The notes under the pieces: generated by a model
Database searches by the model: none
The model's input: the letters and a program-made list of their open reading frames with translations, nothing else
Told to the model about the DNA's origin: nothing
Shown: piece after piece, positions 9,111-30,025 of the stretch
How positions within the stretch are numbered: position 1 is the first letter of the stretch
Layout of the letters: each line of letters begins with the position of its first letter
Source of the DNA: Camelus dromedarius
Taxonomy: Eukaryota
NCBI RefSeq assembly: GCF_036321535.1
Contig: NC_087447.1
Coordinates: forward strand, 12,586,001 to 12,650,000
DNA: 64,000 bases
Direction: 5' to 3'
Translations under genes and position numbers: made by a program

Positions 9111-10879
9111 TTTCTTGAAGAAACATGATGTTGTTTCTTCCTTTCCAATCAGTATAACTTTATTATATAGATTAGAACTTCCAGTACAAGGTTTAATCTG
9201 CTATAACTTAAAAAATATAGCCAATTACATAATCACAAAAACACAAGTAACAAACTTACAGTGGCGGTGGGATGTTTCTAACTATATGACTGTTGTGACA
9301 TTTGTGTAGCTAAAGTCATCAGGCGTTCTTTTAGCAGACACACATCAATTGGTCATTGCAATTGGAGCAGAGTGATATTAAGGAAGGAATTAATGTCTTC
9401 AAGTATAATTTAAACACAATTGTCTGAAGGCTTTCTAGAAAATAAAATGAGAATGCATAAAACTCTTTTTTTGAGTTAGCATCATACATTTAGGTAAAGC
9501 CTGTGCCCTCTAATCTTATTCATTGCTATGTATATAAAAAAGGAAGCATCAACTTCTTATTGTGGATTTCTGATCAAGGGATCTCATACTGAAAAATATT
9601 GATACTTTGCCCTTCCAGATCTGAAAAAGCAAATACACTACCTTTAGGCTACCCATTCAGTTACTGTCGAGCAGTCCTATCTCTTGTTGGAAAAAGCTTT
9701 TGTAAATGTCATGATTATTATAATGCTATTATATTTTAAAGTATATCAGAAAACACATACATAAGTACTTTAGGAAAAACTTTCCTTCAAACTAAAAGCT
9801 GACATTCTGCTTAAAGACAGACCAAATCTTCAACTTTTTTTTGTAACACAAGGAATCTCCACATTAAGGGATCAGGAAACGTGAGCTTTATAATTCTATA
9901 ATGAGTTCTAAAATCAAAAAAAAAATTATTATTTCATGGGAATCCTTAAGCAATAGATTTTATTCTTTAAATTGTATTATTTTGTTTGTGCAAAGAATCA
10001 GGATAAAGCACATCAAAGTTGAGATACAGAAATCTTTCCGCCTCAATTTGAAAAATATACGGTACTGCTCAAATCTTCTCTAATGTGATACGTTGGTAAC
10101 AATCTACATTTTTATATTGCTGTGCAGCTTTATCTCACTGGCTGCTTTCTCACAGTGTAACCCATCATTTGGAGATCTAACACAATTAAAGACGCCTCTC
10201 TTGTCTTGGTGAGAGTACACTTTTAATTCGTGTGACTGTGTTGACTGGAATTAGCAGTGCCCTGGAAGATACAGACTAGCAAGGTCATCTCTCGATTCCT
10301 TATTCTCTAACAAACACGGTGCCAAGGAATTGATACTGTTCAAATATTCTTCATTCCACTTTGAAACCTCCTCCTAAATCACCAGCTTTATGAATCATCA
10401 ATTTTATGAATGATCTTGATGCTCGGACCCATCTTTGATTCCTAGAATACTGATGAAATTAAGTCATTAGGGTAGATTGGTTCCAGGATAAGCCCACGAT
10501 GCCCACGCTCCAAAGGACACTTGCCCCAACTTCCTTCCTCCCGTGGCTTATGTCACTTTTCTGTTCTTCACCCTCTGCTCCTCAAATCTTGCATCTCTTT
10601 TATGTTCTTACTTTTCACTCTTATTAGATGACTTTACCTCAGTGTTTATGGAGAAACACTGAAGCCTTCGGATGAGAATACTCTCATGTTTATATACTAA
10701 AAGTATAAAACTTATCTTTTCACATTCTTCTCCTTCCATATTCCATAAAAGTGATGGCTGATTTCTCTATCTGTGTTAACGATCTCAGGCACTAAGTACC
10801 GAACAGAATACACAGATGTTAGGTAGAGATTTTGGCTTCAAAGAAGAATCTGAGGCCTCAAATCATCAAATTAAGGTTA

Positions 10880-11020
10880 TACCCTTGAGAAATAAAAACT
10901 ACTTTAATTGGCTTTTTAAATTTATTTAAAAAATACTCTAGGGAATGTTCCTAAGAAATATATTATAAATCTTCCCACCTTGTTTTGAGAAAATATGGTA
11001 AGTCAGCTTTGACAGGTAGG
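10880..11020 (+). promoter_or_regulatory. Candidate promoter and first non-coding exon of OR5M10-like a
   Basis: CCCTTGAGA (O/E-like, 10882), TAATTG (10905), CTAGGGAA, TATAAA (10964) and donor CAG|GTAGGC (GT 11016). All but the O/E-like CCCTTGAGA are retained in the paralog at 21180-21325. Confidence 0.5.
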
Positions 11021-12039
11021 CCATTTTTCTACATTTGTTCACTAAAAATAAGTTTGTTCTTTTGTGCAGAGGTTAATATCCCACCAATGGAGAAAAAAAA
11101 TCTTTTCTTTCATTGTACTTTATTTTTCTATTCATATGTTAATATTTAATGGCTTCTCTAAAAATTAATTACTATCTGCAGGCTCTTCTGATGTATATGT
11201 GAAAACTAAATAAAATAGCCTTACGGTGCAATTATTAATGCACATTTTTCCCAGTGATATCTTATTGTCAAAAAAAACCAACAAACCGAGACAGTGGATC
11301 CAGCTGGAAACTAAGTCCATGTTTAAACATTATCCTAATGTGCGTCCCTAAACAAATTTCTTTTATATGTTAGTTGCAAAAAAAAAAATGGGGACAAAGA
11401 AAACTTCCACACTTTCTCCAGATACTTGAATTCTTTATTTACTGTTCCATTTCTGCCTTCTCAGAGAGACCTTTGCTGAATGGCCATCTGAAAGCACCCC
11501 ACCTTTATTTTTCTTCATAATGTTTTCTTCGAACTGAAATTCTGTTGTGAATCCTTGGCTATGCGTTTAGTATCTATCCCTTCCCCTACAATATATGCTT
11601 ATGAGGTTGGGGAATTTCTTCACTGCTGTAACCTCTGAACTTAGAACAGAAAAAAAAAATCAATATTTGCAGTGTACATAAATAATGAGTGGGTGGATTT
11701 ACCAAGCAGAGAGAACAATTCTTCATTCTGTACCTTCTTAGCCATATAGCAAAAGATAAATTTACTAATTCAACATCTTCTGAATGCAATTAAGCCAGAC
11801 AAATATGAGTTGCAAGTGAAAATGCTGTCCTGAATGTGTCTTCTGTTTCGTATCTGAAACAATAGTCTATCAAAGCTGGAGGGAACCTAGAAATTCAGCT
11901 CCCTTCATTTGTCCACTTGAATAATACAAATGATCTACTGCTTTTCATACCTCATTTTTATTCCTTTGGCTTTCTTTTTCACAAAATTTGAAAAAAAATA
12001 CCAAGTATGAAGCTCTCCAAGAAGACAGGTATAAATTGT

Positions 12040-12058
12040 ACACACACACACACACACA
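12040..12058. repeat. (AC)n microsatellite
   Basis: Read directly. Confidence 0.9.
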
Positions 12059-12297
12059 AGTAGGACAGAGAGTTTGGAAGTGTGTGTTTGAGATATATAC
12101 AGAAAGAGTTAACACAGAGATGTAAAGTGAAAGTAATTATGGAAACATTCTGATGCATTTGTTGAGAAGAGTAATTTCCACAGAGATAAATAGTTCAAAA
12201 GTAAATGAAACAAGAATGGAATAAATGCAGAGTCTGGGCTGGACAGAATTCTTCATCTTTTTTTGTCAATTTCAGTTTTTTTTCAAGGGACAAGAAA

Positions 12298-13230
12298 ATG
12301 TCTTCCCCAAACCACACTCTGGTGACAGAATTCATTCTCCTGGGACTCACAGACAACCCAGTGTCAGAGAAGACCCTGTTTGGGGTGTTTCTGGTGATCT
12401 ACCTAATCACGCTGACAGGGAATCTGGGCATGATCGTGCTGATCAGGACAAACGCCCACCTCCAAACCCCCATGTACTTCTTCCTCAGCCACCTGTCCTT
12501 TGTAGACATTTGCTATTCCTCCAACATCACTCCAAATATGCTGTACAATTTCCTCTCAGACCAGAAGACCATCTCCTATGCTGGATGCTTCACACAGTGT
12601 CTGCTCTTCATTGCCCTGGTGATCACTGAGTTTTATATCCTTGCTTCAATGGCGTTGGATCGCTATGTGGCCATTTGCAGCCCTTTACATTACAGCTCCA
12701 GGATGTCCACGAGCATCTGCCTCTCTCTAGTCACAGTCCCTTACACTTTTGGCTTTCTTAATGGGCTCTCTCAGGCACTGCTGACTTTCCACTTGTCCTT
12801 CTGTGGCTCCCGTGAAATCAATCATTTCTACTGTGCTGACCCTCCTCTCATGATGCTGGCCTGCTCTGACACCCGAGTCAAGAAGATGGCGATGTTTGCA
12901 GTTGCTGGTTTTACCCTCTCCAGCTCTCTCCTCATCATTCTCCTGTCCTACCTTTTCATCATTGCCAGCATCTTGAGGATCCGCTCTGCAGAAGGCAGGC
13001 ACAAAGCCTTTTCTACTTGTGGTTCCCACCTGACAACAGTCACTATATTTTATGGAACCCTCTTTTGCATGTACTTGAGGTCCCCATCTGAGAAGTCTGT
13101 AGAGCAGTCCAAAATAATTGCAGTCTTCTATAGTTTTTTGAGCCCAATACTGAACCCGTTGGTCTACAGTATGAGGAACAAGGATGTTATCCAAGCCTTG
13201 CAGCAGATGATTAAGAGAAATCTTTCATAA
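12298..13230 (+). CDS. OR5M10: Olfactory receptor OR5M10/OR5M1-like, copy a (310 aa)
   Basis: [51 protein letters not shown] closely matches remembered human OR5M10/OR5M1. True start taken as Met at 12298, after acceptor AG at 12274-12275; the ORF-track start 12205 is intronic. OR5M10 vs OR5M1 cannot be resolved by eye. Confidence 0.9.
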
Positions 13231-13504
13231 AATTGCAGTTTAAGGATATGCTCATTTGTAATGACTAAGTGTCTGTGACAACCTACTGTTTAGAACCTAG
13301 AAATGAGAAACATTGGACTCTGCCTGTTGATAGAGTTCCCAGTTTCCATTTTTGAGGATCAACATCATTTAGTCTGTGGGACATTCCTTTAACTCATAAC
13401 AAAATTCCTTTTGGCTAGGCAAAGAGTTATGTCTCATTCTTAGCAACCAGAATGTTCTCATATCAAGATTTATAATCCTCTTTCAAAATGTGTTTTAAAA
13501 TCAC

Positions 13505-13544
13505 TGCAAAGTACTTACATTTTGCAAAGTACTTACATTTTGCA
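13505..13544. repeat. 18-bp tandem duplication TGCAAAGTACTTACATTT x2.2
   Basis: Read directly. Confidence 0.9.
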
Positions 13545-13674
13545 TAAATAATTGTATGCTTTCTTTTATTTTATAGTTCTGAGAACCACTGTGACTTTCA
13601 GGACCCAGATTTAAACTCAATATTGGTCACTGTGTTAATCAAAATGGTTGATGTATTTGTGGTCTCTCCTTTTT

Positions 13675-14033
13675 ATATATATATTTTTTTTGCATTTTTT
13701 TTTTATTGAAGTATAGTCAGTTTACAATGTTGTGTCAGTTTCTGGTGTACAGCATAATGTTTTAGTCACACAAGAACATGTATATTCATTTCCATATTCT
13801 TTTTCACCGTAAGTTACTACAAGATGTTGAATAGAGTTCCCTGTGCTATACAGTATGGACTTGTTGTTTATCAGATTTTGTGCGAATCCTCCTGTATTTT
13901 AAAGTGAGAGACACTCTGCCAGAGTTCAGCAGGTGTTCTGTGAGATTCAGTGGGTTTGTGGATGTAATTATTGGTGTATTTGTGGGACAGGCTGAGCTGT
14001 GAGTCTCTCTACTCTGCCATCTTGACACCTCCC
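13675..14033 (-). mobile_element. Short L1 derivative: 5'UTR head fused to 3'UTR tail
   Basis: Minus strand: GGGAGGTGTCAAGATGGCAGAGTAG...CACAAAATCTG joined to ATAAACAACAAG...CTATACTTCAATAAAAAAA. Imperfect TSD CTCCTTTTT (13666) vs CTCCTTCTT (14034). Confidence 0.7.
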
Positions 14034-14199
14034 CTCCTTCTTTTTTTAAATATTCTATTTATTTGTATCTATTTGTGATTTAAATTTTTTTATTTTTAAG
14101 TCTTTGGGTGAAACCAACCTCATAAATTCTTTACAGATAGGATAGACCATAAATCAACAGGTTTAAAAATAATCATAAGTAACACTCAATTATAGTTCA

Positions 14200-14380
14200 G
14201 TGCTCACTTTCACATCACTGCATGTTTAATCCTCACAAAGAAATTAGTTAGAAGATTATTGTCTCCATTTATAGCATTTGGAATCCTAGGCACAGCGAGA
14301 TTAAATGACTTACCCAAAGTCACTCAGCCACTTAGCAGTACAGAGGCAAATCCCTTGATTCCAAATTTTCTCTCCTTCCA
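14200..14380 (-). mobile_element. MIR
   Basis: TTTAATCCTCACAA...GGCACAGCGAGATTAAATGACTTACCCAAAGTCAC is the antisense MIR core. Confidence 0.75.
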
Positions 14381-16426
14381 ATTCACACTGCAATGATTAA
14401 ACCCCTTAACACGCTGCAAATGCTGGGATGATAAACTGATGAGCTTATTGCTATACGTGTTCATGGTGATCATGATGAGAGGATATGACTAATAACCCTT
14501 AATGTGGGTTTCCTCTGACATTTCAGGTAAACATGATCATTTGTCATCATTACAGTAGAGTTGTCTCACTGTTTCATGGAAAGCAGACAATTTTGATATA
14601 TGGAAGATCTATTTAGACTGTACTTTATGAATATATAAAATCCCAGATTATAAAAGCACACATGTTTATTACAAATAACTAGACAATGCAAAGAGATGTG
14701 ACAAAATAACTTGTATGAGTGTTATGTCTTAAGCCAAAGGGTTATTTATGTTTGTGTTTTTTATATTTCTTCTCAATAATTTTATACACATATATTATTA
14801 TACTTGATATAATAAAATTGTAATCATGTGCTGTATACAAATTTGAACATTGAGTTTTACTTGATAGTATAAGGTTTATGTTTCAAGCAGACTGTTTTTG
14901 TGAACACCATTTTAATGCAATTAATATTAATAATTAAATCATGCTTAAACTTAATTACAAAAATAATACATATTGATTATAAAAAACAGAGAAATACTGA
15001 AAATATATAAAAATGTGTAACTTTTCCCCTGATATTTTAACCTATTTCCTCCTGCTCTCTTTTAAGCAACCCTTTATTTTCCCACCAATTTGTGATGTTA
15101 CCTTTCATTGTACCCTAAATGAATCCATTTCTATTTCTTCTAATTTTTTTTACCAGTTTGTTTATGTATTTTAAACCAAATTCTTATCACTAATGTAGAT
15201 TTAAAATATATTTTAATTTCTGATAGAAAAATTCCATCTGTATTGTTTTTGCTTCCAAATTCATCTTAGGAGAACACAAATCAGATATTTATAGCTATTC
15301 AATATTTTTACCTAAGATATTATGCATACGAGTGTTCAATCTAGAAAGTATATGCACACATAAACATGAAACTCCAATCTAGCTTTCCATACATTACATA
15401 TCTATTATAAATTATATGACAAATATGGAGAAATATCTTAGTAATATTGTTTTAGTTCGGTCCCCAGGTCTGATGGCAGATGTATGCAGTGAAGCCCACA
15501 GAGATGGGATGGAAGGTGTAGGAGAGTTAAGTTTTTTGGCTGGAAAAGTGGCCCACAGTCAAGGAGAAAAGCATTTAACCTGTGCACTTTAATGTTGTGT
15601 ATTTATTAACTTTTTACACAAACAGTTATTTTTGCACTTTACCTTTTATTAGGTTTCCATTATGCACGTTATTTTTCCACAAAGGTGTCTAAATGCAGAC
15701 TCTTACCCCTAACTATGTTGTCCTTTGCCAGGAATTGTCCTCCAAATACACATTCTCTTCCACTGTGAGTAATTTCAAGACACTGAGAAAAAATTCTATA
15801 TTGATCCAAGTTAAAATATGTCTTAAGTTTTTAAATAATCAGAAGAAAAATTTCCAAGCTTCATTGCACTGGAGAAATTCACAGTGGAAAAATCACTCAA
15901 ATTTGATGGTAAAAGAGACAGCCAATATTTTGGTGAAGTATTTGCCCCAGATAAAGTAAATTAGTAACCGTATTAAGGTATGATAAGCTCATAGAAATCA
16001 TATGAAGTACAAAAACATTATCATATAAATTAATATTGAAGGCTAACTATAAAAATTAATAAAAGCCCCAAATGCTGAAATTAATGAGTAAAATTGTTAA
16101 TAATCACAAATATGAAATATCATACTGTTTTGTGTATCTACATTTAAGAGAGTTCAAAATGACTGGCACTATATACTTTGATTGTGTCAGGAAAAATAAT
16201 ATACAGTTTTTCTGGAAGTCAACTTAATGTTGTGTTTTCAGGAGTCTTAAAAATGTTCTACACTTTTACTTTGTAAGTCCTACTTTAAAAATTTTACTTT
16301 GTAAGTCCTATTTTTTTTTTTAAAATGTGTTGAAGGCATACAAAGAAATGTGGGTAAAATTTTCGTAGTAAGATTTGTTTTATAGCTGAGAAGAAGGAAA
16401 GAAGTGATGTATTAATACAGGCAGCC

Positions 16427-16652
16427 CAGGAGGGTGGGAAGGGATAGACGGGATTTCAAAATGTAGAGTAGATAAACAAGATTATACTGTATAGCACAGG
16501 GAAATATATACAAGATCTTACGGTAGCTCACAGAGAAAAAAATGTGACAATGAATAGATATATGTTCATGCATAACTGAAAATGGTGCTCTACACTGGAA
16601 TTTGACACAACATTGTAAAATGATTATAAACCAATAAAAAAGGTTAAAAAAA
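16427..16652 (+). mobile_element. 5'-truncated young L1 3' end
   Basis: ACTGTATAGCACAGGGAA...CCAATAAAAAA. 13-bp TSD AATACAGGCAGCC (16414, 16653). The paralogous site at ~27724 is empty. Confidence 0.88.
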
Positions 16653-16656
16653 AATA

Positions 16657-16770
16657 CAGGCAGCCTCACTTTGCACGATCTCCTGTAACTGAAATTGGTG
16701 GAACCTGGAAATGGCTTTGCTTTGTGTGGATCTGCATGACCACAGCGCTGTGCAAAGTGGGGTCTTCCTG
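16657..16770. mobile_element. ~115-bp TcMar/Tigger-type MITE (unit 1 copy)
   Basis: Imperfect TIRs CAGGCAGCCTCACTTTGCAC and GTGCAAAGTGGGGTCTTCCTG, with TA on the left. Confidence 0.6.
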
Positions 16771-18790
16771 CATTCAGTACGGTTAGGCATAGACGTATGC
16801 AAATAGAACTGAGGTTGGCTGTATGTAACTAGAAACCCTGGAAAGCTGTGTTGCCTGTGATCAGAGAGGAAAGTTTGAATATTATGTGACAGATTTTGCA
16901 TTAGAATGTGTATAGACAGTAAAATGAAGATTCCAGTTAAGGGAAGGGAAAATCACTTTGCATAGCTCTTTATGGAAAAAGAAGTGTTTGATAAGTTTGT
17001 AATATATGAGAATTAAGGAAACATAAAATTTGTTTTTTATATCCATGTACTGATTTTCCATGATAAACAATTATTTCTTATATAGGCAAGAAAACAAGCA
17101 AACAAAACCTACGTATTTTCAATTCATCCAGATCCCAAGATGCAAAGTTAAAGGGTCTTTATTTATTATTAGAATTTAAATATGAAAGTAGGAAAAAGCA
17201 GAGGTTCAAAACCTGTTCTATAAAAGTGTTGAACCAAATGGTCATCCATGTGTCCTCTAATTCAAGCTTCTATTATTTTCCCCCTTAAAACTGTTGTGCT
17301 TCTGAATAGGTTGAATTTCTTCAGTTGTAAACAAAGCTATAATTTTATATTTGTTAAGGAGGTGATGGGGCAAGTAAATCATTCTCTATCCATAGTGTTT
17401 TAATCTGGAAAACAAAATTTTTCTTTCATTCAGAAGTTTACTTCTTAAGAGAAAATTCATCCAAAAAGTTTTTTTTCATCTCCTCAAGCTTAAACATCAT
17501 TATCAGTTTCCTAGCATACAATGACATTGAGATGAAGTGACACAAATTAATGCTGATTTCCAATAAATAATGTCGATGGATCAATGTTTTCTGTGTTGAA
17601 TTTATATCTACTCACATATTCACACATGTACCCAATGGAATGAACACTCTCGATAGATTGAGCTTTACTGAGGATGTAGGAAAATTTGAGTACTCAGTTG
17701 TTGGTAATTTCACACATCACTACATCCAAAAAAGAAAGAAATATAAAGAGAAGGAAAAATAAAACTTTAGAAATCTACCTTAATATAGTATATGATCAGA
17801 AATAATAACTTTCATATTAAAGAATTTCTTAAGGAAGGAAAAAAAAAAACTCCCTAAATTTTAAAAGGAGGTAATGTCATAAAATGTCACATATCAATGT
17901 CAAGTTATATTATGCTTGTCAATAAAGACCAGTTTCAAAAGAATATCCGGCGATCTGGAACATGCTTATGCTGCTATTTTGTTGTAAAACACTAAAACCA
18001 AATCTTCATGTGCACTTGAGCAGCTGCTAAGTCAAAAAAAACTCTTTGTGGGAAGACAAGAAATGAAAGGTAATATGTAACCTGTAAGAACAGTTACTAA
18101 TGTTGTAGGGACAGATGATATAAAACCCTTCTCTAAAAAAGGAAAATTCTGAATCAGAAGCAAGTATCCGTTATTGAGAAAGGAATCTGTATTGGTTAAA
18201 AGAAACCAATGAAATAAACTGTGGGATCATTAAAAGATGTACACTATCAGGTTCTTTGCTGAAATAATGAAACACATACAGTTTTATATTCCAGAGAAAT
18301 AGACTAAGAAATGTACCAAAAGTGCAGTAAAAAATGATCAAAATTTGAGATTTGAGTTTCTTTTGAGAAGATAATCAGTTTCCAGGAAAGGGAACTATGT
18401 ATATATCCTATGAAGGTAAATCATTTTCATATTCATAAAATGCATTGCAATACACTTGACTTTGCTGGTAAGAGTGGCTCAGCCAGGCTTAAATATTGCT
18501 GACCTAGGAAGTGAAAGGAAGAAACTTTATGCTAACTAATCTACCGGAGTAAGTTCTTGAGTGAGACTAAAACAATGACTCTGCTTAAGCGTAAACAGCT
18601 CACTTCTGTTGCTGTGTTTCCATCAACCGTCATTTCCAAACAATTTTCTCCTTCATTGTTTCCATTAGACTCTTACCTGATCCCAAACTCTGCAAATATA
18701 TATATTGTATGACTGTTATCCCAGAGAATTGCATTCAGGCAGACCTACAAGGGATAATTTTGTATTGTTTTTGAGACTTTTTTTTTCCCC

Positions 18791-19436
18791 CCATTGGGAG
18801 CCTGTTGAAATAGAATTTTTCTCCATTATACCAAGGTTTCTCACAAATATTCTTCTTAAAGCCTGTTTCACATCCTTGTTCCTAAGGCAATGGAGAAATG
18901 GATTCAGCCTGGAACCCACAAAAATACAAATGCTACCACAGTTTTTACTTGCTCAACAAATCACTCATTTAGTGGTCGTGGATACATGCCTCTATAAAAC
19001 ACACTGACAGCTGTCAGGTGGGAGCCACAGGTGGGGAAGACTTTTCTCTGCCTTTCATTGGAATAAACCTTCATAATGGTGATAAAAATGAAATGCAAGA
19101 GATGAGTATGATAAGGAGGGAACCTGTGAGGTTAATCCCTGTGGACACAAACAGGGCAGTTTGCTTTATATAAGTATCAGAACACATCAACATTAAGAGG
19201 GCTGGTCAGCACAGTAGAAATGGTTGATGGCGTTGGGTCCTCAAAAAGATAAGTGAGAGGTCAGTATTACCTGCACGGTGGCCACCATGGACCCCCAGAG
19301 GTAGGGGAGAGTGACCAGGCAAATGCAAAATGGCCTGCACATTCTGCTGTTGTAATGTGGGGGACTGCAGATGACCATGGGCTGACCATATCCACGGCAC
19401 TGAGCAGGTAAGACTCAGTGAGGAGCAGAGTCATGA
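18791..19436 (-). pseudogene. OR5M13-like pseudogene, 5'-truncated and heavily decayed
   Basis: Homologous to 30026-30690. Reads [13 protein letters not shown], has an in-frame TGA at 18961-18963 and frameshifts, and keeps [13 protein letters not shown]. Homology stops at about TM3 (~19436). Confidence 0.88.
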
Positions 19437-19504
19437 ATGTTCAGAAAGAACTCTCCTAAGTGTTTCTTTTGCCCACTCCAATGTACTACTTACAGCTCCT
19501 CATC

Positions 19505-19625
19505 TAAGCCCTTTTCTCCCCCTCCCCCTTCCCTCCCCTTCTCCCTCTTCCTCGCCTCCTCCTTCCTCTGTCTTCCCCTCATCTCCTCCTCCCCCTCCCC
19601 TTCTTTTTTCTCCTCCTCCTCAATC
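19505..19625. repeat. CT-rich low-complexity tract
   Basis: Read directly; lies next to the pseudogene truncation point. Confidence 0.8.
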
Positions 19626-19924
19626 TTCTTCCAGGCTTTCTTGATACTGGAAACAAGTAAATGAGTGGTGATCAGAGATAAGCCAGCTAGCCTTCTGAAT
19701 TCCATTCTTGATGTAATTGTTTAAAAAAAAACAAAAAACTGTTCAGGTGAAGAATGGGCTTGAAGAAAACCTGAGCTTTCAATGCTTAGCTTCTGACTTG
19801 CTTTAATATAACTAGGAAGACTCCTGATAGCATTGTGCCTCTGTTGTTGTGTATTAAGAGTACCTCAGTATTACACTTCCAGTGAACAATTGGATCTGCT
19901 TGACTTCGATGAAAGTGAAACTTA

Positions 19925-20880
19925 CCTTTAAATCAATTTTGGTGAGGTAAATTTACTTAGAGTAAAATGTAGAAATTTTTAATGTAGTTGGACAAATGTG
20001 CACAGCCATACAATCATAAATCAAGTTTTCAAGGCTACTATGCAGGTAGGGAGAGGGCGTGGGAATAGGGTGCAAAAAAAAAAAAAAAAAACACACACAC
20101 AAAACTCACTTTCAGTGAGATTCTGATATTTTTAGTTGAATAAATACTCCTAGGATTTTTGTAAGCCTTCAGTTACTATCCAGAATTCTGAAAAGTTAAT
20201 TTCAAGTTTCACCAGTGTTTTCATGGGAGAGCAGACTTTGGGAGGCCATCACACTTCATTCAGAAGTTGAACTCCTTTTAATACAATGGTTTTGTGATTC
20301 ATTTAAGTTATATTAGTACTTTGTTCATTTTTTTATTTCTGTGTAGTATTCTATTATATGGGTATATCAGAATTTGTTTATCTATATATCTGCCAACATA
20401 TGTTTGAGTTTCTTTGTGAATATATGCATTCTTTGTTCTTGGACAAAACCCTAATACTTTCTAGGTCTTACTTGTATAAGGGACTAAAACACTTTAAGTA
20501 ATTTTAGAAGAAAAAACTAGTTTTCCAAAGAAGCTGAATTATTTTACACTCCATCAAGTGATGTATTATGACAGTTAATTTAAATTGTCATTGCCAATAT
20601 TTTGGCAATCTTTTTAATTCTTTAATTGATGGGGTTGTGAAGTGGTATATCTAGGTAGTTATAATTTACATTTTTTTGACAATTATAAATATTGAAATTC
20701 TTTTCATATGGTTATTGGAGATTCATATTTTCTTTTATGAAGTATCTGTTCACATCTTAGACTTGTTAAAAATTGGTCTGGTTGTATTTTGATCAGTGAG
20801 TAGTGGAGGGTCTTTATGTATTCTGAATAGAAGTGCTTGTTAAAATTACTGAATATGAGCGTTTTTTTCCTAATCTGTGG
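19925..20880 (-). mobile_element. Old L1 (L1ME/L1MC-like) fragments with a nested L1 5'-end piece at ~20030-20275
   Basis: TTTTGGTGAGGTAAATTTAC..., GTAGTATTCTATTATATG, GTGAAGTGGTATATC and TGAATAAATACTCC...GAATTCTGAAAAGTT resemble antisense L1. Confidence 0.55.
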
Positions 20881-21179
20881 CTTTCCTAGACTTTCTGCTC
20901 CTCAGATCTCTTCCACACTTCACATTTCTACTTCTCATTTTCATCAGGTGACCTCATCTTAGTGTTTATAAAGAAACAAAGCTTTTGGTTGGAATTCCCT
21001 CTTCCATACTATAACCTAAAAACTAAACTTCTCTTTCTTCATCCCATGGTGCTAAAATTAATGGCTAATTTCTCTGTCTATGCTAAAGATTTCACACACA
21101 GTATGAAGCACTGTAAATACGTTATATAGTGATATTGACCTCAGAGGAGAACCTAGCTCCCAAAGCATCAAATTGTCAT

Positions 21180-21325
21180 TACGCTTTTGAGAATCAAAGA
21201 CAATTTTAATTGTTTTCTAGGATGATTTTTAGAATAGTCTAGGGAATACACTTAGGAAATACATTATAAATCTTCCCGCATTGTTTTTTTGAAAATATAG
21301 TAGGTCCGCTTTTACAGGTAGGTCA
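21180..21325 (+). promoter_or_regulatory. Candidate promoter and first non-coding exon of OR5M10-like b
   Basis: TAATTG (21207), CTAGGGAA, TATAAA (21265), CAG|GTAGGT (GT 21318). Conserved with 10880-11020. Confidence 0.5.
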
Positions 21326-22296
21326 TTTCATACATTTGTTCACTAAATATATGTTTTGTTCTTATGTGTGGAGTTTAATATTTCACCGTGTGGAAAACTT
21401 GCATCTAAAAGTACCTCACCCTTATTTTTCTTCATTTTTTTTTGTACTTGCTTCTAACTGACATCGTGTGATGTATCTTTATCTGTGTGTTTAACATCTA
21501 TTCCTTCTCCTACAATATATGCTCCATGAGGTTGGGGGATCTGTTCATTGCTGTAACACCAGACACTAAAACAGGAAAAAACAATTCAATCTCTGCAGTG
21601 TAAATGAATAAATGAGTGTGTGAATTCACACAGAGCAGAGAGAAAAAATCTTCGTTCCATAGCTTCTTAGCCATATGTTGAGATAAAATTCACCAATTCA
21701 GCATCCTCTGAATGAAATCAAGCCAGACAGCAATGCGGCTCAGGTGAAAATGCTGTACTGAACATGAATCTTCTGTTTTGTATCTGAACATTAGTCTATC
21801 AGAGCTGCTGACATCCTAGAAATTCAAACTCCTTCATTTGTCCATTTGAGTGATGCTAATGACCTGATGCTTTTCATAACTGATTTTCATTCTTTTGCCT
21901 TATTTTTCCCCACAAAGTTTAAAAAAATATCAAATGTGAAGTTCTCCAAGAAGACAGGTATAAATGTATGAATATATGTATTAAAATATGCAATATTCTT
22001 AGAGTATATCCATATACAGTATTATTTAGTATTAATAATGAATTAATCATATATATATATACTGAAGGGAGAGAAAGAGAGAGCTTTTGCTATAGAAAGG
22101 GAGACAGCAGTAACCCAGAGATACAGGAAAAATGTTTGTGTAGAAATTCTGATGTATTTGTTGAAAGAAAAGCCTGATTTCTACATAGATAAATAGGTCA
22201 ATGAGTAAATATAAAATGGATGGAATAAATGCAGAAGCTGCATCAGACAAAACTCCTCACTTTCTTTGTCACTTCCAGTTTTCAATGGTTAAAAAA

Positions 22297-23244
22297 ATGT
22301 CTTCCCCAAACCACACTCTGGTGACAGAATTCATTCTCCTGGGACTCACAGACAACCCAGTGTCAGAGAAGACCCTGTTTGGGGTGTTTCTGGTGATCTA
22401 CCTAATCACGCTGACAGGGAACCTGGGCATGATCGTGCTGATCAGGACAAACGCCCACCTCCAAACCCCCATGTACTTCTTCCTCAGCCACCTGTCCTTT
22501 GTAGACATTTGCTATTCCTCCAACATCACTCCAAATATGCTGTACAATTTCCTCTCAGACCAGAAGACCATCTCCTATGCTGGATGCTTCACACAGTGTC
22601 TGCTCTTCATTGCCCTGGTGATCACTGAGTTTTATATCCTTGCTTCAATGGCGTTGGATCGCTATGTGGCCATTTGCAGCCCTTTACATTACAGCTCCAG
22701 GATGTCCAAGAGCATCTGCCTCTCTCTAGTCACAGTCCCTTACACTTTTGGCTTCCTTAATGGGCTCTCTCAGGCACTGCTGACTTTCCACTTGTCCTTC
22801 TGTGGCTCCCGTGAAATCAATCATTTCTACTGTGCTGACCCTCCTCTCATGATGCTGGCCTGCTCTGACACCCGAGTCAAGAAGATGGCGATGTTTGCAG
22901 TTGCTGGTTTTACCCTCTCCAGCTCTCTCCTCATCATTCTCCTGTCCTACCTTTTCATCATTGCCAGCATCTTGAGGATCCGCTCTGCAGAAGGCAGGCA
23001 CAAAGCCTTTTCTACTTGTGGTTCCCACCTGACAACAGTCACTATATTTTATGGAACCCTCTTTTGCATGTACCTAAGGCCCCCGTCTGAGAAGTCTGTA
23101 GAGCAGTCCAAAATAATTGCAGTCTTTTATACTTTTTTGAGCCCAATGCTCAACCCATTGATCTACAGTTTACGGAATAAGCACGTGATCCGTGCCATGA
23201 AGCAAATGATTAAGGGAAATACCTTTCATAGAATTGGACTTTAG
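22297..23244 (+). CDS. OR5M10: Olfactory receptor OR5M10/OR5M1-like, copy b (315 aa, intact)
   Basis: Same family motifs as copy a, with canonical [18 protein letters not shown] and a full tail (TFHRIGL). Acceptor AG at 22277-22278. An in-frame ATG at 22285 could add 4 aa. Confidence 0.92.
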
Positions 23245-25179
23245 CCGTCTGTTTGTTTGTGATTACTAAGTGTCTGTAATAACATAGTGATTCCCTCCAA
23301 AAGAAAACCTAGTCTTTTATAGTCATTATTTGCTTGTCTTCATAAAATCTCCTTAAAATTAATACCTTCAAGACAAATTATTTTAATAAAAATTTTAATG
23401 TTGAAATGAAAATATAGTTTCTTTAGTGAAGAACCTCTGAAAATAAATTGAGTAATATTCAGTAATTCCGTATAACAATTTAACACATTTACTTACTTGA
23501 ATGTAAATATAATTAACTCATTCTAATGGTAACATTAGAAATTCATCTCATTTGAATTTAATAGTCTACAGAACTACCATGAGGCTCTAAACTGAGTGAT
23601 TAAGTTTTACACTTCATTTTTTTAGAAATGTTATGAGCTAATTTATTCTTCAATCTGTGATATAGAACAATGGCTCCAGTGCCTGATTAATCTCTAGATT
23701 CACCTTGGGGAAATTTTAAATATATGGATCTCCCAACGCTTTAAACTTTAATTTAATTTTTTCCCCAGCTCACATCATAGATATCCTGAGAAACTTTTTG
23801 TCCATTTGTAAATATTGGGTTCTGCTCCTCAATATTGAAAATAAATTATCAACGTCTCTATGAGTTTCCAGGGATATGGATCCAATTCAGGTATCAAAAA
23901 GTACAATGGTATTCTAGGTGTACTTTTAATGTAGTTGCTCTGACTCAGGTCTAATTTATCAAGAGTCAATAGAGTCTATCAATTGGTCTGTAGATCAGAA
24001 AATTGCCTTGAAACAATATACAAATGAGTAAGCGTTTACCCACCTCTCTGGAAGAAAACACCCAATGTTTACTTTGGTTTATAAATCTATCTGTGAAACA
24101 TTATTTTCTAGATAAGACTATGCTAGTAGTTCTCAAATTTTCAATTGAGAAAAGCAATAGTATAGAAGCGTATATAAAGAGATACATGATTCATTCACAT
24201 TGTACGTGCATTAGTGGTCAACCAGATGATTGCATATTGAAACATTGATTTAACTTTCTTTACACTGCTTTAAATGTTTGTATTCTAATATTGTGCACTC
24301 TGTTTTTAACTAAGACCACAATACTAAATGCTTGTATGAAATCAATTTCTAAATTTACTGTAATGTGTTCAAATTAGTTTCCAAAAAATCATCCAGGTGA
24401 ACTGCAGTTTTAGAAAATTGAACTTCATTCTCAAGTCTCAGTTGATTGAATAAGGCTGATCCTAGTGAATATGTCCACTATAGATAAATAAATATAGGGA
24501 CAGATGTGAGAAAGTAACATTTACCAGTGATATGTCCTAAACCAAAGGACAATTTCTGTATATATTTTGTTAAATTTTTTCAATAAATTGATATGCTTAT
24601 ATATTCTTTTAATTAATAAGACACAATTGGAATAATATGCCATATTCCAGTTTGAATATTAATTTTCACTTGATAGTATAATGTTTATATTTTCATACAG
24701 ACTAAATTTTTAGTGAACGTAATTTTTAATATAGTATAATACACAGCATCAAATTACACTTGAACTTAATTATAAAAATATTACTTTTCAATTGTAGAAA
24801 AGAAAATTGAAAATACTGAAAGATATTTCAATTTTGGAATAAAGTTTAGTTTCAATTTTGAATAAAAGCACAATTTATTTGTAATCTCTTATTAAAAGAG
24901 ACCTTCTCTCGGCATCTGATGTTTTTTTTTCATTTGTTTATTTCAGAAACCATTATTCTGTCATATTTATCCTGGTTATTTTTACAACTGTCATATATAT
25001 CTATGTATATATCTTTCTGATGTTTCTTTAGGATAGATTCCTAAATGTGGAAATGCTGACTTAAATGCTAAATTTTTCTATGGGTAAATTTTTCTCTAGA
25101 AGGCATCAACCATGTACACTTATGACTAGTAATGTTTGAGAGTAAACATTTCACTGTATTTTTCTTTTTCCTTTTTTCT

Positions 25180-25925
25180 TTTTTTAAATTGAATCATAGT
25201 TGATTTACAGTATTATATTAGTTTCAGGTGTACAACATAGTGATTCAATGTTTTTATGGATTATACTCCATTTAAAGTTATTGTATATGAGTTCATTAGT
25301 GTCTTCTTTTTTCTTTCTTTAGAGTCCACATATGAGTGATATAATATGGTATTTTCTTTCTCTTTCTGGCTTAACTTTACTTAGAATGATGATCTCCAGG
25401 TCCATCCACGTTGCTTCAAATGGCATTATTTTATTCTTTTTTATGGCTGAGTGGTATACAAAATAGAAACAGACTCGCAGACATAGTAAACAATCTTATG
25501 TTTACTGGTGGAAAAGACGATGGGAAAGGATAAATTTGGGAGTTTGAGATTTGTAAATATTAACTACTATATATAAAAATAGACAAAAAACCAAACTTCT
25601 TCTTTACAGCACAGGAAACTATAGTCAATATCTTATAATAACTTCTAGTGAAAAAGAATATGAAAATGAATATATGTATACATATGTATGACTGGGGCAT
25701 TGTGCTGTACACCAGAGATTGACACATTGTAACTTGAATATACTTTAATTCAAAAAAAATAAAAAAAGAAAGTGATGGTAAAATCTTCACTATATTCCTT
25801 ATAATGTAAAATATATTTTTATAACTTATTTTATGCATAGTAGTTTGTACCTCTAATCTCATACCCATGTCTTGCTCCTTCCCCTGTCCTTTTCCCATTG
25901 GTAGCCACTAATTTGCCTTCAGAAT
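25180..25925 (-). mobile_element. L1 3' end, host of a nested insertion
   Basis: TTGAATCATAGTTGATTTACAG...ATACTCCATTTAAAGTTAT resumes after 25768 as ...CTATATTCC...TAGTAGTTTGTACCTC...GGTAGCCACTAATTTG. Confidence 0.7.
25284..25768 (+). mobile_element. 5'-inverted (twin-primed) L1 3' end
   Basis: 25284-25452 is antisense L1 3'UTR; 25453-25768 is the sense continuation with a poly(A) tail. Imperfect TSD AAAGTTATTG vs AAAGTGATGG. Confidence 0.72.
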
Positions 25926-26614
25926 CTCTCTACTTTGTTACATTCATTCATTGTAACTTCATTAATGTTAGAAAATAGTATTTAAGATTATTAGCTTCTC
26001 TGTTGTCTCAACTGAAATTCTTAGGAAAGGAATTTTTTAAATTGGAAGAAATGAATTCAAATATATATATTTAACCAGTAAAGGACATACATCAGTTATA
26101 TATTTTCACAGCCATATTTTACAGAAGTATCTTGAATATTTGAGATACAATGTTGTTGTATGTTGTAATATTACATATAACCCTTTTCTCACATTTTAAC
26201 CCACTTCCTGCTGCTATTTATTAAGCAATGCTTTATTTTCCCACTAATTTGTGATGCTACTTCTCTGTACAATGAATGAATCTTTTTATTTCTTCTTTGA
26301 CCAATCTATAAGTATTTTAAGTTAAATTCTTGTAATTTATATAGATTTAAAACACGTTTTAATTCCTAGTAGAAAAATTCCATATTCATTACTTTTCCCT
26401 TTCAAATTTATCTCAGGAGAATACAAACCAGATATTTCTAGCTATCCAATATTTTCAACCCAGAAATTATGTATATAGTGGTTCAATTTATGAATTATAT
26501 GCATACATATACATAAAAACAAACAATTGAATATGGCCATATACATGATAAATATTTACTGTAAATTACTGGAAAATGTTCAAACATATTTTAGTATTTG
26601 TAGTATTGCTATAG

Positions 26615-26782
26615 ACCTACTGTATAGCACAGGGAACTGTATTCAATTTCTTATAATAACATATAACGGAAGAACATCTGAAACGAAAATACATATGTAT
26701 AACTGAATCACTTTGCTTCAGACCTGAAGCTAAGATTGTAAATTAACTACATGTCAATAAAAAATTTTTAAAAATTAAAATA
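26615..26782 (+). mobile_element. 5'-truncated L1 3' end
   Basis: CCTACTGTATAGCACAGGGAACT...CAATAAAA. 15-bp TSD GTAGTATTGCTATAG (26600, 26783). The paralogous site at ~15440-15465 is empty. Confidence 0.88.
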
Positions 26783-27728
26783 GTAGTATTGCTATAGTTC
26801 AGTCCCCAGATCCAAAGAGATGTATGGAATGGAGTCTTCAAGGAGGGCGGCTTAAGGATGAAATGTTACAGGTGACTTAATTTTTTTTTTGCCAGAAAGG
26901 TGGTGGCCTATAAATGAGGAGGAAATCATGTAACCTTGGGGCATTAATGCTGTTTATTTTTCAACATTTCTAAAAACATTTATTTTTGCACCATTCCAGT
27001 GTCCATAATGTAACATAGTTTTCCAACAAAGATATCTAAATACAGACTCCTATTCCTACTGGAATTTCCTTTTGCTAACAGCTGTCCTTCTAAAGAACTG
27101 ACATGCCCTGCATACCCTCAACTGTGAGTCACTTAGTCACTGAAAAAATTCCGTGTTGATCAGAATTGAAATAAATATGAAATATTTCAGCAATGTGAAA
27201 GGATGTCTCTCAGCTTAATAGCAGTGCAAGCAATTCACAATAAAAGTCACTTGAATTTGATCATAAAATAATTTAAAATTATCAGCACCCAACAAGTTGA
27301 CAAAAGGTTTTGCCACAAATAAGATAAAGTAGAGACAGTACCAAAATATAAGTTCATAGAAATCATTCAAATAACAACATGTTGAAGGCTATGAATAGAA
27401 AATTGATAAAAATTTCAAAATTTTAACATTAGTGAGTAAAACTGTTGGTAATAAAAATATGAATTAAATACTGCTTTGTGTATTATATTTAAGAGAGTTC
27501 AAAAAGACTGGCACTTTGGTACATTGGTAATGTCAGGAAAAATAATAATACATATTTTTTTCTAGAAATTAATTTAGCATTATGTTTTTAGGAGTCTTAG
27601 AAATGGACGCTTTTACTCAGTCTACTTTTCAGCATGTGCTGAAGGAATAGTAAGAAACGTGGGGTGAAGATTTTCATCATAATGTTAGTTTTATAGTTGA
27701 GATAAAAGAAATCATAGATACATTAATA

Positions 27729-27844
27729 GAGGCAGACCTCACTTTGCACGATCTCTTGTAACTGAAACTGGTGTAACCTGGAAATGTGTCTTTGCTTTGC
27801 ATGGATCTCTGTGACTGCAGCATGTTCAAAGTGAGGCCTGCCTG
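27729..27844. mobile_element. ~115-bp TcMar/Tigger-type MITE (unit 2 copy)
   Basis: TIRs GAGGCAGACCTCACTTTGCAC and GTTCAAAGTGAGGCCTGCCTG. Paralog of 16657-16770. Confidence 0.6.
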
Positions 27845-28221
27845 CATTTAATACACAGTTAGGCACAGACATGCGCAAATAGAACTGAGGCCCGCTCTAT
27901 GTAACCAGAACCCCTGGAAGGTTGTGCTGGCTGTGATCACAGAGGAGAGTTTAAATATTATGTGACATGTTTTGCACTAGAATGTATACAGACATTAAAA
28001 CGAAGAAGTTCCCAATTAAAAAAAGGACAATTCATTTTATATAGTATTTTTATGAAAAAGGAAGGGTACTTCAATATATACATTATGATAATTTTGTAAA
28101 ATACTAGAGTTAAGCAAAAATTAAAACTCATTCTTTTTATCTTATGCACCCATTTTCCATGATAAACAATTATTGCTTTATAAGCAAGAAAACAAAAAGT
28201 CCATATTTCCAAACACATCAA

Positions 28222-28374
28222 GGGGGAGAGGGTACAGCTCAGTGGTAGAGTGCGTGCTTAGCATGCACGAGGTTCGGGTTCAATCTCCAATATCTCCAGT
28301 AAAATAAATGAATAAATAACCTACTTACCACCCCCACTAAAAAACGGGAATAAAAAGAAATTAAAAAAAAAAAA
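28222..28374 (+). mobile_element. tRNA-derived camelid SINE (vic-1 type)
   Basis: GGGGGAGAGGGTACAGCTCAGTGGTAGAGTGCGTGCTTAGCATGCACGAGGTTCGGGTTCAATC (A and B boxes) plus an A tail. Absent from the paralog at ~17120. Confidence 0.9.
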
Positions 28375-30025
28375 CAAACTATCTATATCCCAAGATATAA
28401 AATTAAAGGATCTTTATTTATTAATGTTAGAATTGGAATATGAAAATAGAAAAAAAAACAGAGGCTCAAACTTGTTCTATAAAATTGTTGAACTGGATGG
28501 TCACTCAGGGTCCTTCTAAGTCAAGCTTCTATTATTTTTCTTTAAAAATATTGTACTTCTGGATAGGCTAAGCTCTTCAGAGGTCATCAAATCTATCTTT
28601 ATGTGTCTGTTAGGAGTGAGTGATGAGGGCCACTGACTGTCAATTTCTCTACCTACAATGTTTTAATCTGGAACCCCAATTTTTCTTTCATTCAGAAGTT
28701 TCCTTCTCAAGAGAAAGTTCCTCTGAATAAAGGCTCTTTTCTTCTTGAGATTAAAGATCACTATCATTGTAGCTAGCACACTATAAAATTGAGAAAAAGT
28801 GAAATAAATAAAAGTTGAGTTCCAACAAATTGTATCTGATGCATGAATGCTTTCTGCATTGCATTTATATCTGCAATATTCACACATGCACACAATCAAA
28901 TGAGACTCCCAAGACTATTAAGGATGTGGGGTAACTAGAGTTTTCATTGGCTGGTGTTGCTTTCTTATGAAATAAATGAAAGAAATATAACGACAATGAA
29001 TAAAACTGTGGATATCTTAATATAATAACTGATCACAAGTAATAACTTACAGATGTAAAGATCTTCCTAAAGAGGGAAAAATAAAACCCCTTAATTATTA
29101 AAACAAGGTGGTGAACTATATATGTCATATCAGTGTTGTTATATTATGCTTTTAAATAAAGATCAGTTCCAAAGAATATCAAGCAGTGTGAAATATGCTT
29201 ATGCTACAATTTAGTTGCGAAACACTAAAACCAAATTTTCATGCATATTAAACTAGCTGTTATTTTAAAATTGTTTGTGGCTAGAAATGAACTGAAAAGT
29301 GATGTGTAAAAAACTGATGTGTACAATTGTTAATATTGTAGGGACAAGATGATATAAATATCTTATTAAAGAAATGAAAATTCTAAATCAGGAATGGATA
29401 TCTCCTATTAATAAGGGTGTCTGTTTTGTTTAAAGAAAATGAAACTAATCATTGGGTTATTAAAATGTAAAATATCAGGTTTTTGGCTGAAAGAATAAAC
29501 ATATATGGGTTTCCATTCAAGCAAAGTAGACATAAAAATTCATCGAAGGTTCATTCAGAGCAAGCATAGAAAATTAGAGAAATGAGATTTTTCTCAGAAG
29601 ATAATCACATTTCATTAAGGAATATACGTAAGATATACCAGGGAAGAAAATCAGTTTCTTATTGAGGAAATTTACTACGATGTGCATCACTTTGCTGGTG
29701 AGAGCAGCTCAGGGATGCTCCATGTTGGTGACCTAGGGAGTGAAAGAGAGAACTTCTCTGCTAACTAATCAAGTGGAAATGAGTTCTTGAGTGACGCTAA
29801 AACCGTGAACAGCTGAATCGTAAACAGCTGACTTCTGCTGTTGTGTTTCTTGCCCACCATCATTTCCACACAACTTTGCCATTCTGTTTCCATAGGCTCT
29901 CACTCGATCCCAAGCTCTGCGTGCATCTAAACTATGATTGCTGTTCCAGAGAGTTGCATCCCAATGTTGGCAGAACCAACAAAGCATACTTTTGGATTGC
30001 TTTTGAGATTCTTTTTTTTTTTTTT

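Follow-up and report, generated by a model that had tools for sequence, protein, structure and literature searches.

Two tandem olfactory receptor (OR) genes of the dromedary are nearly identical over their first 259 codons, five-sixths of the coding sequence, and clearly different in their last codons and in the surrounding DNA. How did this partition arise, and what has kept it? We addressed this question in a 64,000-nucleotide stretch of Camelus dromedarius DNA (assembly GCF_036321535.1, contig NC_087447.1), hereafter the window, which contains both genes, copy A and copy B. Both copies were intronless open reading frames (ORFs) of about 310 amino acids with the 7tm_4 domain and the OR motifs found in class II receptors; copy A contained MALDRY at 118, KAFSTC at 236, and NPL at 286, and NPxxY was also present. 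The Pfam domains 7tm_4/7tm_1 (PF13853/PF00001) came from precomputed annotation of relatives in the protein cluster, into which copies A and B both fell. The nearest named relatives were OR5M10, OR5M10-like, or OR5M1-like proteins from many mammals, with 85–89% identity. Based on these sequence features, the pair was assigned to the class II ORs, family 5, subfamily M (OR5M10/OR5M1-like). In C. bactrianus, C. ferus, and alpaca, copy B lies more than 10 kb from any called neighbouring gene. The features are listed in Table 1.

Table 1. Positions of the genes, duplication units, homogenised tract, and sequence markers in the window.
Feature	Position	Strand	Basis or remark
Copy A, intact OR5M10-like olfactory receptor gene	12298..13230	+	ORF; 310 aa, short A-type tail ending KRNLS
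Copy B, intact OR5M10-like gene	22297..23244	+	ORF; 315 aa, long B-type tail ending FHRIGL
Duplication unit with copy A	10574..19433	.	Colinear with 20894–30680, blocks 67–78% identical
Duplication unit with copy B	20894..30680	.	Colinear with 10574–19433
Homogenised tract, copy A	12295..13074	+	3 nt of 5'UTR plus codons 1–259
Homogenised tract, copy B	22294..23073	+	Same A versus B comparison
Unconverted 3' coding end, copy A	13075..13230	+	ECL3, TM7, helix 8, tail
Unconverted 3' coding end, copy B	23074..23244	+	Tail-tree placement among B-type tails
2-bp deletion site giving the short copy A tail	13221..13222	+	A/B alignment
Variant 1	12423..12423	+	A=T, B=C; both states in both copies across Camelus assemblies
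Variant 2	12710..12710	+	A=C (Thr138), B=A (Lys138); both states in both copies
Dromedary-side B-to-A transfer marker	12745..12749	+	Codons 150–151, Thr-Phe
Variant 3	12756..12756	+	A=T, B=C; private to dromedary copy A

In an ungapped comparison of 12298–13074 with 22297–23073 (offset 9999), exactly 3 of the 777 sites differed, as a first-pass annotation of this DNA had claimed. These were 12423 (T/C, codon 42, silent), 12710 (C/A, codon 138, Thr/Lys), and 12756 (T/C, codon 153, silent). Identity had also been said to fail directly upstream of the ATG, and the alignment agreed: identity began 3 nt before the ATG, the first mismatch was at 12294 (−4), and further mismatches at −7, −8, and −11 were followed by a 4-nt indel at −19 to −22. 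Downstream, our recount of 13075–13221 reproduced the 23 differences in 147 bp given by the annotation. These differences were graded, with 6 in the 74 nt of 13075–13148 and 17 in the 73 nt of 13149–13221. The contrast of 3/777 with 23/147 was significant by Fisher test (p=1.6e-16) and by a max-chi-square permutation test (p<5e-5); because the 3' edge was graded, the single best max-chi-square breakpoint was 13148, not 13074. The earlier description of a sharp tract from the start codon thus held for the 5' edge and not for the 3' edge, which was graded and varied among species. The tract was the sole near-identical part of colinear paralogous blocks that extended over about 9–10 kb. High identity did not run on into these flanks; their strong divergence was as annotated, and the measured identity was 67–78% rather than about 75–80%. 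Overall, copies A and B diverged by 0.39% in the tract, 15% in the tail, and 22–33% in the flanks.

The dS of the tract was 0.011 (2 synonymous differences at about 186 synonymous sites), compared with 0.57 in the tail, where dN/dS was about 0.18. This difference in dS indicated that selection or chance could not account for the tract. The orthologous copies A of camel and alpaca diverged evenly (3.2% in the tract, 3.85% in the tail, and 4.5% upstream), so uneven constraint was not the cause either. At its 3' end, copy A differed from copy B at 24 of 156 sites and from alpaca A at only 6 of 156. A GC3 excess, as expected from GC-biased conversion, was not found in the tract, whose GC3 of 0.64 was within the range of neighbouring ORs (0.54–0.66).

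The two parts of the genes yielded different trees. In the tree of the first 259 codons, sequences grouped by lineage: alpaca A with alpaca B (100/96), Camelus A with Camelus B (96/78), and the hippo copies with each other (99/97). In the tree of the last 51 codons, A-type tails (91/89) and B-type tails (85/89) were grouped across Cetartiodactyla. Copy A joined the 310-aa genes of ruminants and hippo and the pig gene, and copy B joined the B-type tails of alpaca B, camelid paralog C, the hippo 315-aa genes, and peccary. The opposite groupings were rejected by AU tests (p=0.0005, 0.0002, and 0.004). Within one lineage, derived residues were common to both paralogs, namely S23 and T40 in Camelus and T197 and R235 in alpaca. 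A partition like that of the camel pair was also seen between the A and B proteins of alpaca and between the hippo copies, the latter with amino acid differences at 2/259 and 9/51 positions (p=2e-6). These results indicated that the A/B duplication predates the split of camelids from other even-toed ungulates, and that Camelus and alpaca underwent homogenisation separately once their lineages had diverged. The annotated pattern, in which TM1–TM6 are homogenised and TM7, the tail, and the upstream DNA are spared, was supported by the comparison of tract and tail, the orthologue distances, the trees, and the AU tests alike. F83 and I134 were likewise shared between paralogs, but the outgroups vary at both sites.

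We then read the direction of transfer from markers in Camelus, with copy B DNA compared in two dromedary assemblies (the window and CamDro3), the tract edges of C. bactrianus, C. ferus, and alpaca resting on proteins plus copy A DNA, and orthologous copy A DNA located through the neighbouring gene at 5694–6629. At 12423, T was found in window A, C. ferus A, and both CamDro3 copies, and C in C. bactrianus A, alpaca A, and window B. At 12710, C was found in window A and in CamDro3 A and B, and A in window B and in the copies A of C. bactrianus, C. ferus, and alpaca; Thr138 was also present in the B proteins of C. bactrianus and C. ferus. The 12745/12749 state A..T occurred in window A, CamDro3 A, and every Camelus B, and T..G (Ser-Cys) in C. 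bactrianus, C. ferus, and alpaca A. At 12756, T was limited to window A and CamDro3 A, with C in all others. Dromedary A thus carried the B-type Thr138 and Thr150-Phe151, which were absent from C. bactrianus and C. ferus A, and the B copies of the latter two species carried the Camelus-A-derived Ser262, just beyond the dromedary 3' boundary. The markers pointed to later, smaller transfers in both directions: from B to A on the dromedary side (12710, 12745, and 12749) and from A to B across codon 262 in the Bactrian/wild-camel lineage. In few haplotypes, including two of dromedary B, there was also evidence of continuing exchange from shared variants; over about 2.4 kb, the two B haplotypes differed at 2 sites, each of which also distinguished A from B.

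Taken together, with a probability of about 0.9, the sequences suggested an ancient tandem pair in which recurrent two-way interlocus conversion maintains the homogeneity of about 780 bp, beginning 3 nt upstream of the ATG and ending with codon 259. The first-pass annotation was correct in calling conversion over codons 1–259; a single tract from one event was not upheld, since the tract groups by lineage, carries species-specific markers, and has variants shared between copies. The homogenised block also exceeds the typical length of single tracts, and it is therefore probably maintained by several events. In the sequence-dependent model of conversion, both initiation and extension need near-identical DNA. 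One founder event would have set both edges of the block; later events, needing near-identical DNA to start and extend, would begin and end inside it and would halt where mismatch density jumps, so that the edges would stay nearly in place. The start at the ATG is most readily interpreted as the boundary of the founder tract, beyond which later identity-dependent events could not pass. The outcome is a pair of genes with separate upstream regions, different TM7 and C-tails, and a near-identical part from the N-terminus to TM6, which holds most of the predicted odorant pocket.

Selection might instead have set the edges. Conversion would then supply the variation, and selection would keep the pocket part identical and purge any overwriting of TM7 and the C-tail or of the upstream region. 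This would explain why the same partition occurs in camelids and in hippo, and it accords with the absence of the N-terminal-homogenised, distinct-tail pattern from the rhinoceros and horse pairs. The conservation of both tail types across Cetartiodactyla and the dN/dS of the tail also fit this reading, and no B-type state was found in the roughly 60 nt upstream of the copy A ATG in any camelid examined. However, the 3' edge moves, lying at codon 262 or beyond in the B copies of C. bactrianus and C. ferus and, by protein comparison, between about codons 263 and 292 in hippo, and stable edges are already predicted by homology dependence alone. We consider selection-set edges unlikely. An adaptive partition since at least the camel-alpaca split, parallel in hippo, in which selection has used conversion to combine one odorant pocket with two TM7/C-tails and upstream regions, is similarly doubtful; if it were true, a single receptor specificity would come in two versions that differ in regulation and in signalling or trafficking.

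Hybrid genes could also arise by unequal crossing-over or by a recent partial re-duplication. The former occurs in tandem ORs, and a double crossover is indistinguishable from conversion. Nevertheless, each copy retained its own upstream DNA and its own tail, which a single crossover cannot yield; this arrangement held in CamDro3 and, for copy A, in C. bactrianus, C. ferus, and alpaca. Copy number and spacing were identical in the Camelus assemblies examined, and the exchange was two-way with small patches. The probability of this origin is accordingly small.

Near-identical paralogs are a classic source of assembly error, and collapse, polishing, or gap filling might have written one tract over the other. 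In CamDro3, copy A even contained a divergent, frameshifted patch over 11714–12639, exactly across the 5' junction; CamDro3 copy A was therefore rejected as independent support for that junction. The same assembly did show the junctions of the window for copy B and for the 3' two-thirds of copy A. The first-pass annotation had proposed looking for the tract and its three variants in other camelid assemblies, and in C. bactrianus and C. ferus the copy A DNA had the same flank-to-tract junctions, with A-specific flanks adjoining a tract that differed from window A at 5/781 sites. An assembly artefact is thus very unlikely, because other assemblies share these junctions; moreover, the alpaca A and B proteins are partitioned alike, and neither the three A/B differences nor the markers specific to individual species would have outlasted a collapse. 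Strong purifying selection or convergence on the N-terminal part without DNA exchange, conceivable because this part holds conserved OR motifs, was refuted by the homogenised synonymous sites and by the 3.2% divergence of orthologues across the same stretch. RNA-mediated conversion through a processed transcript would fit the start of the tract near the 5' end of the coding exon and has hardly any probability: the roughly 20 nt from the acceptor-like TTTCAG/TTCCAG (by eye) to the ATG contain several mismatches and a 4-nt indel between the copies, and the tract stops inside the exon, short of the exon's 3' end.

That tandem OR genes undergo conversion is textbook knowledge, and the camel pair is a clean, well-resolved case of this well-known process, not a new process. 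In the mouse MOR28 cluster, as Nagawa and colleagues reportedly found in 2002, the coding sequences of paralogs are far more alike than their non-coding flanks, which was ascribed to conversion; compared with that case, camel homogenisation is limited to the first 259 codons, and TM7 and the tail diverge as expected of an old duplicate. The human gamma-globin genes HBG1/HBG2, described by Slightom and colleagues in 1980, are said to be arranged in tandem like the camel pair, with conversion in a 5' block and an unconverted 3' part. Their boundary reportedly lies at a simple repeat, whereas no obvious repeat was seen by eye in the camel alignment at 13040–13080. No publication on conversion in camel ORs came up in our literature searches. 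In primate OR clusters (Sharon et al. 1999, Genomics 61:24; in the references of PMC1794568), non-allelic conversion between paralogs of the same cluster is likewise reported, with mosaic similarity and gene-tree conflict. By comparison, the camel pair is far older, its edges are near-constant in two camelid lineages, and two-way transfers are readable from species-specific markers. Genome-wide studies of non-allelic conversion (Harpak et al. 2017, PNAS 114:12779, listed in PMC10463633; PMC3790853, PMC4467073), reportedly concern short one-way transfers between paralogs, delayed divergence, and shared variants as well. In contrast to these, the camel case is a single locus followed across species, not a genome-wide estimate, and its block is longer than typical single tracts.

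If codons 1–259 are not analysed separately from the tail, orthology calls, gene trees, and dN/dS tests on these ORs will be wrong. Codons 1–259 suggest a young camel-specific duplicate; the tail suggests a duplicate older than the even-toed ungulate radiation. The locus is also a compact natural case for sequence-dependent conversion, with a 5' edge held in copy A of two lineages, two-way transfers, and variants shared between copies. A near-identical pocket combined with separate upstream regions and different tails would roughly double the sensory neurons with that specificity. In copy A, the sequence after the 2-bp deletion, read two bases out of frame, gave F-H-K-I-A-V-stop, which is the tail of the horse and rhinoceros 315-aa genes.

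The OR5M10-like genes copy A (window 12298-13230) and copy B (22297-23244), with intact ORFs of 310 and 315 aa on the forward strand, have relatives in other mammals named OR5M10 or OR5M1-like at 85-89% identity. An ungapped comparison at an offset of 9999 revealed only three mismatches between 12298-13074 and 22297-23073 (codons 1-259, hereafter the tract), at the same positions as listed by the first-pass annotation. The recount from 13075 to 13221 likewise returned its figure of 23 differing bases in 147. It was observed that mismatch density rose stepwise after 13075, from 6/74 nt to 17/73 nt. On the upstream side, A/B identity started at 12295, and the nearest mismatch was 12294 (-4 from the ATG), with others at -7, -8 and -11 and an indel of 4 nt spanning -19 to -22, in agreement with the reported loss of identity just before the start codon. 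The description of the tract as sharp held for the 5' edge, 3 nt before the ATG, but the 3' edge was graded and shifted between species.

Fisher's test (3/777 vs 23/147, p=1.6e-16) and a max-chi-square permutation test (p<5e-5) ruled out chance as the cause of the A/B contrast. Synonymous divergence between the copies was 0.011 in codons 1-259 vs 0.57 in codons 260-308. Uneven constraint was also ruled out, because copy A of the window and that of alpaca were similarly diverged in tract (3.2%), tail (3.85%) and upstream DNA (4.5%). In a gapped alignment, we found that 10574-19433 and 20894-30680 (approximate limits) form two colinear duplication units, and near-identity between them was confined to the tract. 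The flanks were thus far less alike than the tract, as previously noted, although non-coding identity was 67-78% rather than 75-80%. Judging from this alignment, the exact 9999 offset is a coincidence, because adjoining blocks were offset by 9808 to 11342. Inverted pseudogene fragments lay at matching places in both units, indicating that two OR genes were present in the unit before it was duplicated.

For comparison, the A/B protein cluster comprised A-type, B-type and paralog C sequences of C. dromedarius, C. bactrianus, C. ferus and V. pacos. Camelid orthologous DNA was obtained via the neighbouring OR5AP2-like gene (window 5694-6629) with 10-kb flanks, which yielded four loci. In unique flanking DNA, the window differed by 0.33% from CamDro3 (a second dromedary assembly), by about 0.6% from C. 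bactrianus and C. ferus and by 4.1-4.2% from alpaca, which placed it on the dromedary side. Paralog C (P0125, P0130 and P0128), found in camels and alpaca on chromosome-scale sequence other than that of A/B, carried a B-type tail, and its N-terminal part was 18-19 aa from A and B. It seems to escape A/B exchange and serves as a natural control for the divergence that A and B would have reached.

Variant sites, OR-like features of the window and camelid loci compared
Feature	Window position	Strand	Details
Variant 1	12423		A T / B C; codon 42, silent
Variant 2	12710		A C / B A; Thr/Lys138
Variant 3	12756		A T / B C; codon 153, silent
Inverted OR-like pseudogene fragment	18991-19377	-	duplication unit with copy A
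Inverted OR-like pseudogene fragment	30068-30913	-	duplication unit with copy B
OR-like ORF	45164-45874	+	236 aa, TTG start, without TM1-TM2
L001			CamDro3; both copies; gene model fuses neighbour with part of copy A
L002			C. bactrianus; copy A
L003			C. ferus; copy A
L004			alpaca; copy A

The two parts of the genes gave conflicting phylogenies. In the tree of the first 259 residues, A and B grouped together in alpaca (100/96) and in all Camelus (96/78), as did three hippo genes (99/97), whereas the last 51-56 residues separated an A-type group (91/89; camelids, ruminants, pig and the 310-aa hippo gene) from a B-type group (85/89; camelid B and C, the 315-aa hippo genes and peccary). AU tests on the tail rejected a single Camelus A+B group (p=0.0005), and those on the N-terminal part rejected single groups of A-type genes (p=0.0002) and of camelid A (p=0.004). 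The short tail of copy A resulted from a 2-bp deletion; two bases out of frame, the A sequence still gives F-H-K-I-A-V-stop, as in the tails of horse and rhinoceros genes. Because its KRNLS ending is also present in ruminant proteins, and given the tail tree, the A/B duplication would be older than the Cetartiodactyla radiation. The flank identity was compatible with this age.

Derived states were then polarised against paralog C and outgroups. S23 and T40 were common to Camelus A and B, and T197 and R235 to alpaca A and B, which also shared F83 and I134, where outgroups are variable. Such lineage-specific states in both paralogs indicated that homogenisation occurred in Camelus and in alpaca after their split. 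Thr138 and Thr150-Phe151 (12710, 12745 and 12749) were found in copy A of the window and of CamDro3, with Thr150-Phe151 also in every Camelus B, and copy A of C. bactrianus, C. ferus and alpaca had Lys138 and Ser-Cys at codons 138 and 150-151. These sites mark a B-to-A transfer on the dromedary side. Copy B of C. bactrianus and of C. ferus had Ser262. In Camelus A this residue is derived, because alpaca A and the ruminant and hippo A-type genes have Pro262; its presence in B marks an A-to-B transfer extending past the dromedary 3' edge. At codon 40, C. ferus A kept the ancestral Ala, and dromedary and C. bactrianus A had Thr.

The variant sites also segregated between assemblies. At 12423, T occurred in window A, CamDro3 A and B and C. 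ferus A, and C in C. bactrianus A, alpaca A and window B. At 12710, the A copies of both dromedary assemblies and CamDro3 B had C, and the B proteins of C. bactrianus and C. ferus had Thr138; window B had A, as did the A copies of C. bactrianus, C. ferus and alpaca. T at 12756 occurred only in dromedary A. Window B and CamDro3 B did not differ over 1492 nt upstream or over 158 nt of tail and were distinguished only by 12423 and 12710; two random SNPs would hardly both land on A/B-differing sites. Our reading of these two B haplotypes is that A/B exchange is continuing, with no one order of events favoured. The tract A/B distance of 0.39% (Poisson 95% range 0.08-1.13%) was below or close to the local dromedary-Bactrian distance (0.5-0.6%) and about one tenth of the camel-alpaca distance (3.2-4.5%). 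Because C. bactrianus A differed from window B at only 3/781 bases, the ancestor shared by living camels probably had a homogeneous block already, with small exchanges afterwards.

The A-specific states in the roughly 60 nt before the ATG were all common to camels and alpaca, as were most from 13075 on, and in these regions of copy A no B-type state had entered in camels or alpaca. In copy A, the 5' edge has therefore been stable from before camels and alpaca diverged. The 3' edge shifted a little, reaching at least codon 262 in B of C. bactrianus and C. ferus and falling somewhere from about codon 263 to about codon 292 in hippo. Under the sequence-dependent conversion model known from the literature, a founder conversion event would have fixed the block edges, and later events, which require near-identity, would begin and finish within the block and halt where mismatch density jumps. 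The 5' edge would then be where one founder tract stopped, close to the boundary of the coding homology island, and an edge near the start codon would need no special mechanism. Conversion through an RNA intermediate is unlikely, because the ~20 nt separating the acceptor-like site from the ATG are divergent. The tract showed no GC3 excess over neighbouring ORs.

A similar contrast was detected between the hippo 310-aa and 315-aa genes (2/259 N-terminal vs 9/51 C-terminal residues differing, p=2e-6) and between alpaca A and B (5/259 vs 11/51, p=2e-6), and no such contrast in the rhinoceros (26/259 vs 5/51) or horse pair (35/259 vs 10/55). The hippo genes with this partition (P0030, P0040 and P0047) were all on one contig. 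The hippo partition suggests parallel or inherited homogenisation. Together with the alpaca contrast it leaves room for selection on the N-terminal/tail partition, which we consider improbable.

The tract spanned the N-terminus through TM6 (MALDRY at 118, KAFSTC at 236), and the unconverted part comprised ECL3, TM7 (NPxxY at 286), helix 8 and the tail. With the edge at codon 259/260, after TM6, the proposal that TM1-TM6 are homogenised and TM7, tail and upstream DNA are not was upheld. A and B should therefore bind nearly the same odorants but be chosen, and perhaps trafficked or coupled, differently. According to references in PMC1794568, conversion among OR paralogs has been on record since 1999; PMC3790853 and PMC4467073 quantify non-allelic conversion between duplicates well, as does Harpak et al. 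2017 (as listed in PMC10463633). A literature search on conversion in camel ORs found no paper, and the A/B pair is a new, unusually well-resolved case of already known OR conversion.

The tract recurred in other camelid assemblies, a check proposed at the outset: A-specific flanks joined it in C. bactrianus and C. ferus, and CamDro3 confirmed all of copy B and the part of copy A from 12640 on, so an assembly artefact is very unlikely. CamDro3 offered no support for the 5' junction of A because a divergent patch covers 11714-12639 (L001 about 15894-16819), which also accounts for the fused 423-aa GenBank model. The patch contained about 36 substitutions, with transitions outnumbering transversions roughly 2 to 1, and several frame-breaking indels; 13 of its 48 deviating columns, including a 2-bp insertion, matched alpaca A, and its upstream part was A-like. 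It looks like real older A-like sequence, not sequencing error, and apparent candidates are another pseudogene copy introduced by gap filling or a deep haplotype. An insertion of roughly 1.97 kb (L002 18574-20546, L003 about 18602-20573; empty site at window 14246-14260), bounded by a target-site duplication of 12-15 bp (TGAGAAGATTAT), resembles a minus-strand L1 with a truncated 5' end. C. bactrianus and C. ferus carried it, but neither dromedary assembly nor alpaca did, indicating a young insertion of the Bactrian/wild-camel lineage. The TTG-start ORF is probably a truncated pseudogene of the same cluster. The window also contained 238 N at 7881-8118.
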